Positions 48,410-56,361 of a stretch of 64,000 bases of DNA are shown here, in pieces. Position numbers and translations under genes: made by a program. The stretch is from Paragordius varius. Taxonomy: Eukaryota > Animalia > Nematomorpha. Location of the stretch: positions 1,804,263-1,868,262 of the forward strand of contig OZ176060.1 of assembly GCA_964247055.1 (NCBI GenBank). The letters run 5' to 3'. Position 1 is the stretch's first letter. Each line of letters opens with the position of its first letter. The notes beneath the pieces are model-generated. The model saw nothing but the letters and a program-made list of their open reading frames with translations, searched no databases and had not been told where the DNA came from.

Positions 48410-51400
48410 TGGTTTCCATGAAATACTTTCTCTCAGAAATATCGAAAAACTCATTTTTCTTCCGAACTTTTGTTGATATAAATAAAAATGTTTCAATACC
48501 GGAACAACATGCCTTTTCCTCACAACTCAAAAAACAAAAAAATAAACTAAAGTTTGATCATCGCAAAGTTTATATTCCAGAACAACGAAATAGCCCAAGA
48601 AAGAGTGGTAGCTCTATTGTTGGAACCGCATTAATTGGGGGTAAAAAATTAATTATTAGGCAATATAATGGGATTAATTGAAATTATATATATAATGTAG
48701 GAGCGGCGACAGGTGAATTTTTTTCTATTTTATATTTTTATAATATTTTATTGATAAAATTATTTACAACAGGTGTGATTGGCGGTATGATATATTTTTA
48801 TATATATTAGTTTTTTTTAGATGTTTTGTTATGTATCTAGATTTATATTTTTGTCAATGTCTTTTTGTAAGAAAAAAGAGGATGTCAGCGCAACGCATAA
48901 AATATTTTTGAAGTTTATAAAATTTTGCTTATGTTTCACTACATTATAAGTCCTAATACTATATTTTGAATAATACAATAACTAAAATAGTTTATAATAT
49001 ATAAGACGTTCAAGGATATTAAACTTTAATCCTCTAAAATATTAAAAACCCAATAAAAATTTATGAACTGACCTCATAGTTTCTCTATTAAAGTAACCCT
49101 TTTGTCTCTCATTAAAATAAATAGCACCAAATCAAATAACATTTCCAAGTTTGATAAAGAGTTAATCCGTCCCACACCTTTAGTTTTAATTTAAGTTCAA
49201 TAATTCCTATGAAATCATACACGCAAATACAAATATTTTTTTAAAAGACAACCATATTTTAAATAGAACCTATCATTTTGGACTAAAAAATATGTAAAAA
49301 GGTATACCATTTGCACTTTAAGATCCCTAAACACTTTAAGTTGGGACTTTTTGTTTTGTTTTTTAATTTATATCAAAACGTGTTTTCATTTATTTTATTA
49401 TTTTGATCCCATTCTCTGATTTATCAACATTTTTAAATCACTATTGATCATTAAAAAACTGTATATCACATTAAATATATATTAATGAGATTTCAACATA
49501 ATTGATACAAGGTTATTATTTATAATTTTTTTTGAAAATTTATACTTGAATAATATTATAGAAATGAAATAAAATGGATAGAAACAAAAATTGTTTTTTA
49601 ATTAAAAAATTAATTTTAAATTAATAAATATAATATGATAATTAAAGAAAATTAGGTTAAAAAATAATAAAATAAAAAATACTTTTAAAATTATGGTTAA
49701 ATCTTAATTAAAAATTTAAGGACATGTTCATGGACCAACTTGAAGTGTTACAGATCCAACTTGAAGTGTATGGTATATACTTAAGAGTTTTAAACCAGGT
49801 ATGAAAAGTGTGGGTATCCTTTAGAAAAAACTATTCGTTTCAAATTCATTTATTTTTACTGTAAATATTTTGCCAAAATAATTTAGCTGTTGTTGGGGGT
49901 GGAGCCTCGGAAACACCCGAAGTGGCAGCTGTCGTACAAGGAGTCAATGATATGGAGTTGGGTGAAAATGTAGCACAAAATCTCGCAAACAACGAAAACC
50001 CAACTGATGAAGAAAACAACATTGAAGAACGACAAGAAAATCCAGAAAGAAACTCAAGATCATCTGAACATCAAACTAATCAACCTTCTCAGTCGACTTC
50101 AAATTCCAGTAGTTACATATTAAACTTAAATAAAATTGAAATATACGGACATACCGTAAAAAGGCAATTATTTTTTTTCAAAAATATATATAATTGATTG
50201 TAAAAACGCTATATTTAAATTTTAAGCAAGATAAGTATTTTGAATTTTTTTTAAAAGAAAAGAGTTATCTTTTGAAAAAAATAGTTGTCTTTTTTATCTG
50301 CGTTTTGTCCGTAAAATTTCATTTACTGTATATTTAGTTTATATTTTCTTTCCAGATTATGAGATTTTATTATTGGTTGCATATCTATCAATAATATTGT
50401 TATTTAATTAAGGAAATTCACCAGAGGAGAATGCTAGATTAGACACAGAAGATATCGGTAATTTTAAAAAAAATGCTATACGAATGAAAATACTGTAAAA
50501 CATAAAATTATAATGACAAAATGTAAAAATAAAAAAAATATTTTTGTCGTAAAGACACCCATATTTTTTTAACCTTAACTTTTCTCATATAAACTTTAGT
50601 TTTATATGTAAAATATAGAATTGATTAGTCTTCTCACTTTGTCATTTAATAAATGAGTTTTATTGAATAAATCATGTGAAAAAAGTATGGTTGTCTTTTA
50701 AAACATATTTGTCTTTATACGTTTTGTCCGTATAATATAATTATTACTATAAAAAAAATAATAACCTTGCATTATATAGCTGATAGACCTGAACACACAT
50801 CAGAAGAAATCGAAAATGGTAAAAATATAAATCGAAATTAATATAATTCTCAATTAAATTTTAGTTATACAATTTTTATAACAAAATAGCCCGAGAAATC
50901 GTGGATCGATACGGTAGAACAAAACAAATTAAATTAAAGTTTATCATTTGAATTAATATATTTTTATATCAATTTGTATAATGATAGGAATGTATCATTT
51001 AAAAGCAGGTTGTAATTTTTATAAATAATATTCAAATACTATAAGATACTATGATAATTTCTTATATGTTTAGCTCTGTACAATATAGAAACTGGTAAAT
51101 CAACTGAATACACAATTCAATTCATTTATTCTAAACTTCATATACACTTAGGGGCAGAGAATGTGATGTATGAAGCCGAAAATATAGTTACAAGTTAATT
51201 TTTATAAATTACTAATAATTTATCTTGAAATCAAAATTATACAGGCTAATCGCCTAAAACAAATAATTGGGCTCGCAAAATATGGAATATAGATGTATAT
51301 TGGTGAAAGATAACTATCATCGTTTAAAAAAATACCATATTTTTAAAATTCTTTTAATTTTACGTTTGATATGTTTATTCTAATGTATAATTGAAGACAC

Positions 51401-51417
51401 CAGGTTTCTTGGAAGAG
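48410..51417 (+). CDS. Micro-exon gene, segment A; exons 48581(or 48410)-48640, 48701-48712, 48773-48784, 49887-50108, 50413-50457, 50780-50818, 50890-50913, 50988-51008, 51074-51094, 51152-51193 (or -51186 joined to terminal exon 51245-51292), 51397-51417
   Basis: Sizes 60, 12, 12, 222, 45, 39, 24, 21, 21, 42 and 21 nt are all multiples of 3, all phase 1 and GT-AG, and the short introns are mostly 57-74 nt. Peptide: QRNSPRKSGSSIVGTALIG-GAAT-GVIG-AVVGGGASETPEV..(N/E/S-rich)..-RNSPEENARLDTEDI-ADRPEHTSEEIEN-AREIVDRY-GMYHLKA-ALYNIET-GAENVMYEAENIVT-NTRFLGR. Confidence 0.7.
49307..49773. mobile_element. Foldback MITE, close relative of 17701-18493 with fewer 21-bp modules, inside an intron
   Basis: tata|ccattt...gtatgg|tata. 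Internal sequence aaagaaaattaggttaa...attatggttaaatc...aatttaaggac matches 18220-18305. Confidence 0.75.
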
Positions 51418-53802: not shown

Positions 53803-54875
53803 GTATAAAAAGCGGAAAATTATAATATTGCCATGGGAAAATGAAGTACAATATAATGCGTTTTAAAGAGGAGATCAGTAATTATAGGGAGACTTATAAA
53901 GAAAATAAGTACGCTAGGGCGTCTTAAACTAGTTAATTTAATAAGACTGAAAATGCTACAAATAATGACGGGATATAGTGATTGAAATTATCCAGAAAAA
54001 AGCTAGTTTAAGCATAATTATAAAACATTGATATTCATTATAAAACCCCTTTGGCTAGAAAATGAAAAGAGATATAATTATAAAAGTTAATAATATATTT
54101 GTGTTATTATATAGTTTTCTTAAAAAAAAGGGTTTTCCAAAGCATCTACAAATCTTTAATTTAAATATTACGAAATCTGGAAAAGAAAAGTAGTTAGATA
54201 ACTAAAGTTGATAGATCTTCTACAAAGTTTATTCGTTGTTTTGTAAAAAAAATGAGATTATAGGAAGATTTTCTATAGTAATCATTGTATAACAGGCATT
54301 CACCAAAGTAAAATAGAGATTTTATAATCTTTATTGTTTTATATTAAATGTATGATATTTTTAGGTAGATATATGAAGTTAAATACCTATAATGCTGAAC
54401 TTATTCTTTTATATTTTTTATTTAAACGAAAAACATCTGGCTTAAAATGTTGCCTAATATGTTATTTATCATTAGGGTAATTGCTTTTCGGTATAGAAGA
54501 CAGAATTGTAAAATGATTTTTAATTAATTGGAATCCCCGATGGTATATTAATAAACGATAAATCATAAAATAAAGTGTGTTGGTAAAACACATAACCAAA
54601 ACTATATTTCATGTTAACGTTCAGCGTGTGTTAATCATAAACCTGATCGATTACAAACAAGACATTAACTTTCAAGGGACGAGAAAGGCTGTTGAATACC
54701 GAGGGATTAACTCGGAAAATATTAGAGAAGATAAAACCATAATATAGTAATATCAAATGTTTAAAAAGGAAGAGGAGTTAATTTAATTTAAAAAAAAATT
54801 TTTGTTATGCCGAGCGCTGAATTTTGGGACCTTGATTTACACATCGATATTTTTAATAATTATTTTTTTAATTAG

Positions 54876-56361
54876 ATTTACGTCAACTTCTGGAAGGTAA
54901 TTAATATGTAGTTTAATATAAAATATTACAACAGGCGTTGAAGACGGTTTTCAAGGTATTTTCGCAATATAGTTAAATTAATTAAAATAAAATAAAACAC
55001 ATTTGCAATAACGTTTAATTTATCATAATTTGAGTTTTTTATATTAGCTCTTGAACAACGATTTACTGGTATGTTTTTTTGGACAAAGCGAAATGGAAAA
55101 AACTGAATTTTTAAGCTTTATTATATATATTATTCTAGAGAGTACATCCGCCACACTAGGTTAAAATTAATTTTTATATTTTAGCTAACGATCTAAATAT
55201 AGTGGGTAAGATATATAATTGTATTTTCACATGGCAGAAATATCTGAAGACATTAATGGTATAATTTAAATTCTTTCCACATAATTAATATTTATATTGA
55301 TGTTATTTTTTATAATAGACGCAATAAACGCTGAAGAATGTAAGGAAATTATTGAAATTTATTTTATACTAATTTTTTAAACACTTTCATTACATTAATG
55401 TCCATATTCGGCTAAACAACTCTGCTGGGTGTGCTCCTTTTTGAGTCATATTTTCGTTTTGATAAAAGAGTGCGAATCTCTTTTTACGACAAAACTAACA
55501 ATCTATCTCTATTGTATCGATTTAACATCCGTTTTATAACTATCCTTTACTTTCTTTTTCGTATAACCTTTTTTTGTAAAAATGACACCGATTAAATGCT
55601 TATGTCCATGAATTATTTTATGTCTCATTAAATATAAATAATTTTATTGCATTGTTAAATTCAACCAAATATATTTAATATCTCTATTTACATCGGTTTG
55701 ATGATTGCAGATTTTTACTTTAAAAAATCTTCTGACTTTCATGTACTGATAAAATATAATATTCATTTATTTATTGACCTATGCATAACCTTCCAGTTTG
55801 ATAACCCATTTGTTAAAATTGGTACTTAAGCCAGTGTTATAATGAAATTCCTACCAACCTTTGATCAGTTTCTGTATTAACTAACGCTTCTTTCATTAAT
55901 AAAAAAATAGTTCGTATCTTAGTATAGTTCAATTGATTAATGATTAATTTAAAATGATTTTCTTAATGTAGAGATGTTAAATTAAGTATTTTTTATGGCT
56001 GGTAAGTTATCTTGCCAAAAACAATATTAACAGAAACTAAATTTTATGACTCAAATTTATACAATTATATTATACATATATATTTGAAGACATGGATGCT
56101 ATTGGTAATTTTAAATCAACATAATGACATCTTTCGCAACGATTTTAAATTAAGAATATAAGTTTTTGCTTTTCAATCGGTTTATTTCGAATATACCATC
56201 ATATTTTATTTTTTTCGAAAATGATTTTGTATACACGTTTTTAACTGAAATTTTTTTTGTTAACTAATTAAAAATAGAATTTAATTTTGCTTTCTAAATT
56301 CTTCCAAATTAAGGTATTTCATTGAATTTTCATATTAGATGAAGACAATAAAGAAGTATGA
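54876..56361 (+). CDS. Micro-exon gene, segment C; seven 21-nt exons at 54876, 54935, 55048, 55139, 55185, 55238 and 55319, then a probable 15-nt exon 56090-56104 and terminal exon 56339-56361
   Basis: Each 21-mer is preceded by an AT-rich tract ending in AG, followed by GT, and open in phase 1. Joined: DLRQLLEGVEDGFQALEQRFTESTSATLANDLNIVEISEDINDAINAEE. Exons between 55340 and 56090 are uncertain. Confidence 0.75.

Follow-up and report, generated by a model that had tools for sequence, protein, structure and literature searches.

A 64,000-nucleotide stretch of DNA, here called the window, forms the right end of contig C11 in an animal assembly of 110.6 Mb (Paragordius varius) and carries a chain of 24 exons on the plus strand at positions 48418-56361. 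We consider it likely that this chain is a single protein-coding gene, with a predicted single-pass membrane product and a place in a lineage-restricted family. The window has a GC content of ~24%. Its copy of the gene is referred to as W, and five full paralogues elsewhere in the same genome as P1 to P5. In W the chain runs from an ATG at 48418 to a TGA at 56359-56361 and comprises 957 nt with the stop codon. The open frame is intact over 318 codons, and 23 GT-AG introns of 25-1321 nt would be spliced out to give a predicted product of 318 residues.

The exons of W measure 223, 12, 12, 222, 45, 39, 24, 21, 21, 42, 21 and 42 nt (exons 1-12) and 15, 12, 21, 21, 21, 21, 21, 21, 21, 21, 15 and 23 nt (exons 13-24). 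Every internal exon (22/22) has a length divisible by three and lies between phase-1 introns (phase 1-1); the sizes are 12 (three exons), 15 (two), 21 (eleven), 24, 39, 42 (two), 45 and 222 nt. Micro-exons of 12-45 nt account for 21 of the 24 exons (exons 2, 3 and 5-23), with a longest run of 19 (exons 5-23). As eleven exons are 21 nt and two are 42 nt long, much of the C-terminal half consists of one heptad per exon. The rule of three is limited to the exons, since the intron lengths of W distribute over the remainders modulo 3 as 7/8/8. A first-pass annotation of the locus had proposed exons of lengths divisible by three in a single phase, which is borne out for those of 12-45 and 222 nt: they lie where it had placed them, flanked by AG and GT, in phase 1-1. 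Its 60- and 69-nt exons have no conserved counterpart; the interval 48713-48772 (60 nt) is intron 2, which is open and 60 nt long in W, while P1-P4 have 57 nt here and P5 has 44 nt. Nor is an exon beginning at 48410 needed, because exon 1 starts with the conserved ATG at 48418.

The window copy was the basis of the model, and the paralogues served as an independent test. Elsewhere in the genome, five more matches each were found for the 222-nt exon and for the block of 21-nt exons, with constant order and strand. Around each match ~17-20 kb were fetched and compared with the window; the three segments A, B and C in which the first-pass annotation had placed its candidate exons are arranged alike, in order and strand, at all six loci. 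The whole loci were aligned with MAFFT FFT-NS-i and the exon chain was read from this alignment, except for exons 5-7, 15 and 24 of P5 and exon 5 of P2-P4, which the aligner had misplaced and which were positioned by hand from the raw sequence. The identical 24-exon chain is open in P1-P5, with 319-326 codons from a conserved ATG to a conserved TGA. Where exon lengths vary at all between copies, they do so by 3, 6, 12 or 15 nt. In the six copies the chain is flawed only by a TAA in exon 8 of P1 and by a change of the exon-4 donor from GT to AT in P3 and P4. W, P2 and P5 have all 23 splice-site pairs and a complete frame, with a synonymous divergence (dS) of W and P2 from P5 of ~0.65. The introns of P5 are largely unalignable to those of W, yet its exon chain stays open. 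The phase-1 frame is open in all 22 internal exons and each of the other frames in 11 of 22, and the joined sequence contains 18 and 32 stops in its other two frames in W and 18-32 in every copy. BLAST islands between W and P5, found blind to the model, cover 69% of the exon bases and 12% of the intron bases and touch 19 of the 24 exons.

Substitutions between the copies follow the reading frame. The pairwise ratio of nonsynonymous to synonymous divergence (dN/dS) is 0.35-0.46 in most comparisons and rises to 0.64-0.83 for P1-P3, P1-P4 and P3-P4, pairs with donor-defective copies. For the micro-exons alone, a dN/dS of 0.23 was determined between W and P5 (bootstrap confidence interval 0.14-0.35, 170 codons, dS 0.89), and their differences fall at codon positions 1, 2 and 3 in the numbers 40, 26 and 63. 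This pattern clearly points to purifying, and not diversifying, selection on the micro-exons.

All exons lie on the plus strand. Exon 1 (48418-48640, 223 nt) contains the ATG and ends in phase 1; it codes for a basic N-terminal region and for the first part of the hydrophobic segment. Across the six copies the ATG is kept and the exon measures 223, 235, 235, 238, 238 and 229 nt, changing in steps of 3 only. Directly upstream, 9-17 nt before the ATG, is an acceptor-like TTTTAG(CAG) (48401-48409, plus strand), of which the TTTTAG is unchanged in all six copies; judged by its sequence, it could be a candidate acceptor of an intron in the 5' untranslated region or of trans-splicing. Exons 2 (48701-48712) and 3 (48773-48784), 12 nt each, encode parts of the transmembrane segment and keep AG/GT and length in all copies, with synonymous GCT/GCC variation in exon 2. 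The end of the transmembrane segment is encoded by exon 4 (49887-50108, 222 nt), together with a conserved ASETPEV..QG.ND.ELG motif and an acidic low-complexity block. This exon is 222, 219, 219, 216, 216 and 222 nt long in the six copies, and 41 of 73 residues are invariant.

Exon 5 (50413-50457) is flanked by AG and GT in every copy; W, P1 and P5 have 45 nt here, and P2-P4 have 39 nt. The flanking AG/GT is likewise found in all six copies for exon 6 (50780-50818, 39 nt in each, that of P5 placed by hand), exon 7 (50890-50913, 24 nt in each), exon 8 (50988-51008, 21 nt, with the in-frame TAA of P1) and exon 9 (51074-51094, 21 nt, length kept). Exon 10 (51152-51193, 42 nt) encodes two heptads, and its donor reads GTTAAT in W, GTAAGT in P1-P4 and GTACAT in P5. 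Exon 11 (51397-51417, 21 nt) is identical in W and P1-P4, and P5 keeps its AG/GT. Splice sites are again kept in all copies for exon 12 (52739-52780, 42 nt, length kept), exon 13 (52809-52823, 15 nt, with a 28-nt intron before and a 31-nt intron after it), exon 14 (52855-52866, 12 nt) and exon 15 (53566-53586, 21 nt in each, that of P5 placed by hand). Exon 16 (54876-54896) opens a series of seven 21-nt exons that continues with exons 17 (54935-54955), 18 (55048-55068), 19 (55139-55159, followed by a 25-nt intron), 20 (55185-55205), 21 (55238-55258) and 22 (55319-55339). Exon 23 (56090-56104, 15 nt) keeps AG/GT in all six copies. The coding part of exon 24 (56339-56361) has 23 nt, or 26 nt in P1 and P5, and ends with the TGA, at the same place in every copy.

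Some intervals in the exon region did not hold up in the comparison or concern single copies. The candidate exons 54087-54131, 54215-54226, 54257-54277, 55869-55913 and 51310-51372 have lengths that are not frame-conserved between copies, and a candidate at ~55975-56004 would form a TAG with the preceding base. For 51245-51292 (plus strand) the first-pass annotation had described an alternative phase-0 end; the interval does read ANRLKQIIGLAKYGI followed by a stop, as it had said, but it lies inside intron 10 and is not a conserved terminal exon: P1-P4 carry indels of 6 nt and 36-38 nt, and P5, with an intron 10 of 33 nt, lacks it. The caution of that annotation, that some weak-donor exons might be chance calls, was apt for this interval as well as for the 60- and 69-nt candidates. 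At the exon-10 donor (51194-51199) the GTAAGT of the family has become GTTAAT in W only, with AGT TAA then in frame. Read-through at this donor leads to a stop after these two codons and hence to a product without the C-terminal helical half; from the donor sequence, a truncated product of the W copy through weak exon-10 splicing is conceivable. In P5, an extra in-frame segment of 15 nt flanked by AG and GT lies between exons 4 and 5 in an acidic, Ser-rich context (C2:14633161-14633175, minus strand). Its counterpart in W is a frame-shifting 20-nt AG..GT interval, and the segment could be a cassette exon peculiar to P5 or simply a chance match.

The splice sites of the six copies are uniform, with AG at 138 of 138 acceptors, GT at 136 of 138 donors and A at donor position +3 in 124 of 138, which gives the consensus G|GTA for the donor and (T/C)AG for the acceptor. 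Retention of an intron of W would introduce a stop or shift the frame in 21 of 23 cases. Five introns of W have only 25-38 nt; those between micro-exons include 55160-55184 (25 nt), 52781-52808 (28 nt) and 52824-52854 (31 nt). All six copies have 28 nt between exons 12 and 13; between exons 13 and 14, five have 31 nt and P5 has 34 nt, which suggests a lower limit of intron size under selection. At the other extreme, introns 11 and 15 reach 1321 and 1289 nt in W and up to 4850 nt in P1. The GC content is 0.38-0.40 in the exons versus 0.22-0.31 in the introns. The motif GAAGA is 10-20 times denser in exons than in introns; it could aid exon definition or merely reflect the Glu/Asp-rich coding.

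All large length differences between the copies are insertions within introns. Two of these were tested, and both belong to dispersed inverted-repeat families, in line with the first-pass annotation, which had placed miniature inverted-repeat transposable elements (MITEs) in the introns. The MITE-like insertion in intron 14 (52965-53395) has 49-nt terminal inverted repeats of 21-nt units, is present in W and absent from P1-P5, and gave at least 3046 genome matches on both strands at a first look. P1 and P5 lack the MITE-like element in intron 5 (50511-50760), for which the first look gave at least 1481 matches on both strands; intron 5 measures 322 nt in W, 71 nt in P1 and 77 nt in P5. Another member of the latter family is found in intron 20 of P5. 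Elsewhere in the window, at 17720-17875 and 18301-18474, two arrays of 21-nt units (7.5 and 8.3 copies) lie in opposite orientation ~430 nt apart. As their unit is related to the terminal repeats of the intron-14 MITE, the pair may be a larger member of that family.

The predicted product agrees with the first-pass description of a Gly/Ala hydrophobic stretch, an acidic Asn/Glu/Ser block and helical modules. Residues 1-64 are basic, with a net charge of +9. They are followed by the sole strong hydropathy peak, residues 67-85, which has a 19-residue Kyte-Doolittle mean of 1.99 and is conserved in all copies. This segment is rich in Gly, Ala, Val and Ile, shows the GxxxG spacing of a Gly-zipper and is coded across exons 1-4. 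Residues 92-190 are acidic (net -18) and of low complexity, with Pro, Asn, Ser and Glu, and residues 191-318 are proline-free and again acidic (net -14). A hydropathy heuristic found no signal-like hydrophobic run in the first 40 residues of any of the six copies; the best 12-residue hydropathy in this region is 0.52, and charged residues occupy positions 7 and 10. The product thus has the features of a single-pass type II protein, namely one bilayer-length segment, no cleavable signal, and charges that fit an N-terminus in the cytosol. On these grounds it is most likely a signal-anchored (N-in, C-out) single-pass membrane protein that would expose an acidic stalk carrying amphipathic or coiled-coil helices. 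The first-pass annotation had noted that variable surface or secreted gene families often lie at such positions near telomeres. Secretion is not supported, since the N-terminus has no signal-peptide-like hydrophobic run, while the signal-anchored appearance fits a possible surface location.

The 21- and 42-nt exons encode 15 heptads, in which strong hydrophobic residues occur 2/9/3/3/6/9/4 times at positions 1 to 7, that is mainly at positions 2, 5 and 6. A permutation within the heptads gave p values of 0.03 for W and 0.02 for P5. Position 1, the junction residue, usually has a codon starting with G, because the G|GT donor requires a G. From this pattern, a coiled-coil nature of the C-terminal part is weakly supported.

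The genome contains six full copies, W and P1-P5, and one truncated copy. When exons 1 and 4 were searched as proteins against the whole genome, at E values up to 10, only these seven family loci matched. A processed retrocopy was sought in the genome and not found, all matches to exons 1 and 4 being the seven intron-bearing loci. In the seventh copy (C2:15004979-15006430; C2:15005104) exon 1, with a TAA, is joined straight to exons 6-11 with the introns kept; it is a deletion derivative and not a retrocopy. W and P1-P4 have a segmental duplication in common (48324-59091 in the window), with ~73-85% nucleotide identity, introns included, while P5 matches the window in short islands only. The ordering by dS sets P5 apart as an outlier, followed by W and then P2, with P1, P3 and P4 nearest each other.

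Four of the copies, W (right end of C11), P2 (left end of C10), P3 (right end of C2) and P4 (right end of C9), adjoin telomere repeats. Each is the last gene before a TTAGGG/CCCTAA array of 2.4-2.7 kb, with its 3' end outward and a distance from stop codon to array of 4.6 kb in W, 4.9 kb in P2, 3.4 kb in P3 and 3.3 kb in P4. In the window the TTAGGG array occupies 60969-63423 (plus strand, 2.4 kb), 4.6 kb past the stop codon. P1 and P5 form an inverted pair ~30 kb apart, ~560-610 kb from the right end of C2. With paralogues next to telomere repeats at four chromosome ends, the family is a subtelomeric multigene family, and it would have spread by segmental duplication between chromosome ends. 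The first-pass annotation had suspected such a family and a telomere distance of about 5-12 kb. Both are confirmed, by the four copies that are the last genes at four contig ends and by the 4.6 kb (3' end) to 12.6 kb (ATG) that separate W from the start of the repeat at 60969.

The DNA around the array has features of its own. Past the clean TTAGGG repeats, at 63320-64000, a degenerate G-rich stretch is followed by an (AAGTTA)n array. The same G-rich and (AAGTTA)n sequel is seen at the start of C10 (1-300) and at the end of C9, while C2 ends in degenerate G-rich repeats. The sequel has the look of telomere repeats miscalled in long reads, and not of a real satellite. Between gene and telomere, two overlapping open reading frames (ORFs) in different frames both match RVT_1 (59071-59872, plus strand), with an A-rich tail near 60490-60520. 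The two make up a broken non-LTR (long terminal repeat) retrotransposon, with a frameshifted remnant of a reverse transcriptase. A similar retrotransposon-like fragment lies near 47046. The duplication common to W and P1-P4 ends at 59091, in or beside the broken element.

Searches outside the genome were made with exons 1 and 4, the other 22 exons each encoding fewer than 20 residues. With these two exons Pfam returned no family and word searches no relatives. A HMMER profile of exon 4, run against 1.84 billion representatives, matched only two bacterial repeat proteins. Both matches were rejected as spurious, as they share only a short AQG(I/V)NDM-type motif, summed over repeats. The ESM Atlas gave no usable match, and of 180 pattern matches in a metagenome scan none was confirmed. 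Relatives outside the genome were thus not found in these searches, and the family appears to be restricted to this lineage.

Elsewhere in the window, a 281-residue C2H2 zinc-finger ORF (28295-29140, minus strand) is a tandem array of 84-nt (28-codon) units, with repeats at 28297-28960; the 84-nt repeat is the zinc-finger unit itself, because ORF and array coincide. Neither an Rfam family nor a tRNA was found in the 44-61 kb region of the window.

Several other explanations of the locus were weighed. The exon chain could be a set of chance AG..GT picks in AT-rich duplicated DNA, with no gene behind it. The model was indeed first built by choosing open intervals divisible by three, and the introns of the four close copies are also 70-90% identical. 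We regard this explanation as extremely improbable, however: the model stays open in P5, with introns that for the most part cannot be aligned, 18-32 stops fall in the other two frames of the joined sequence, substitutions are concentrated at third codon positions with a dN/dS of 0.23, and a minus-strand ORF at 48228-48530 is closed in every paralogue. It is very unlikely, too, that the locus comprises two or three separate genes corresponding to segments A, B and C, whose phase and orientation agree by chance. Promoters could hide in the long introns 11 and 15 (1321 and 1289 nt, to 4850 nt in P1), and in W alone a failure of the exon-10 donor would end the product of a first gene two codons later; in P1-P4, though, this donor is the consensus GTAAGT, and order and strand are the same at all loci. 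We read the three segments as one gene because a single frame runs through 24 exons in six copies, no conserved in-frame stop occurs before exon 24, and the comparison of W with P5 revealed no other conserved island in introns 11 and 15 that would fit as a first or last exon. The first-pass annotation had left the choice between one highly modular gene and a cluster; the single 24-exon chain in W and five paralogues favours the former.

A different question is whether the family is still in use. Its members could be relics in duplicated subtelomeric DNA, with a selection signal that reflects past function, and the nonsense codon of P1, the lost donor of P3 and P4, the truncated seventh copy, the P3-P4 dN/dS of 0.83, the weakened W donors after exons 10 and 19 and the broken retrotransposons flanking the copies all fit such a loss. 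We nevertheless consider it unlikely, as W, P2 and P5 have all 23 splice-site pairs and a full frame despite a dS of ~0.65 to P5. An unused frame of ~320 codons would close, since ~9% of random codons are stops at 24% GC. Conversely, the family could act like the micro-exon genes (MEGs) of flatworms, with a secreted or surface product, micro-exons skipped in combinations and the chromosome ends adding variation at the level of genes. This possibility is a doubtful one. The architecture falls within the operational definition of a MEG, any internal exon could be skipped without a frameshift, skipping of exon 8 in P1 would render its nonsense codon harmless, P5 has a 15-nt candidate cassette between exons 4 and 5, and the family adjoins telomeres. 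Against it stand the N-terminus without a signal-peptide-like run, the purifying rather than diversifying dN/dS of 0.23 in the micro-exons, and the exon number and lengths, nearly fixed across copies at a dS of 0.65.

The reading that we prefer, one intact gene for a single-pass membrane protein with heptad-coding micro-exons, has points against it as well. The model, with its 23 predicted splice junctions, is derived from genomic sequence, and three donors of W are weak, namely GTAGTT (exon 4), GTTAAT (exon 10) and GTTAAA (exon 19). With defects in three of the six copies, part of the family may be decaying. Hydropathy and charge are the basis of the transmembrane and topology calls. The heptad signal is modest, the Fourier power at period 3.5 is unremarkable, and the exons of 12, 15 and 24 nt break the heptad register. 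Finally, the searches with exons 1 and 4 found no homologue outside the genome that could lend the protein a function.

We tentatively suggest, as a possibility well short of probable, that the family encodes membrane-anchored helical surface proteins with one heptad per exon, kept at exchanging chromosome ends, and that it represents a system of surface variation by splicing and recombination that arose independently of the flatworm MEGs. If this is true, adding or omitting a 21-nt exon changes the length and the face of the helix and leaves the frame and the heptad register undisturbed. Most knowledge of MEGs comes from parasitic flatworms; there the genes code for secreted proteins of the host interface and are still poorly understood. 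The family described here combines an extreme MEG-like architecture with a different kind of protein and has no detectable relatives. It therefore offers a natural test of how exons of 12-21 nt are recognised next to introns of down to 25 nt, of whether symmetric micro-exons serve in-frame variation or are a by-product of intron gain and exon duplication, and of how animal chromosome ends breed new gene families. Such genes are probably undercounted in the annotation of this genome, because standard gene finders would miss or mangle them.

By the operational definition of Olson et al. 2020 (PMC7653826), a MEG has at least seven exons, of which at least half are shorter than 70 nt and divisible by three, with four or more in a run. 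With 24 exons, 21 micro-exons and a run of 19, the gene falls well within it. It has in common with the MEGs of Schistosoma mansoni, Echinococcus multilocularis and Hymenolepis microstoma the series of tiny exons divisible by three, the larger end exons and the interspersed long introns (PMC10526429, PMC7653826). In both cases the families resist gene finders, are confined to one lineage, have been made by duplication and have retrotransposons nearby (PMC10526429, PMC7653826). The products of flatworm MEGs have an N-terminal signal peptide, are secreted and usually have fewer than 190 residues (PMC10526429). The product predicted here, in contrast, has 318 residues and an internal Gly-zipper segment and is without a signal-like start. 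The dominant exon size is 21 nt, or one heptad, compared with 15 nt in S. mansoni. A further point of difference is that purifying selection acts on the micro-exons, and their skipping is here a possibility given by the exon symmetry. A sequence relation to any described MEG family was not found in word searches and Pfam with exons 1 and 4 or in HMMER with a profile of exon 4. For these reasons, the missing signal-peptide-like start, the 318 residues and the lack of a detected sequence relation, we do not class the gene among the flatworm MEGs despite its architecture.

Two further systems offer parallels. Subtelomeric multigene families include the var genes of Plasmodium, the VSG genes of trypanosomes and the PAU and FLO genes of yeast. 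The present family resembles them, by analogy only, in supplying the last genes at several chromosome ends, in its presumed spread by exchange between ends and in having pseudogenes among its copies. It differs in residing in an animal, in numbering only six or seven copies and in showing no sign of switching or diversifying selection. In fibrillar collagen genes, the exons for the triple helix have 54 nt or related sizes and encode whole Gly-X-Y units each. The families are unrelated, the collagen exons are larger, and the repeat is a triplet of the collagen helix instead of a heptad of an alpha-helix. In both, however, the size of the exon is locked to the repeat of the protein, so that loss or gain of an exon keeps the frame and the structural register.

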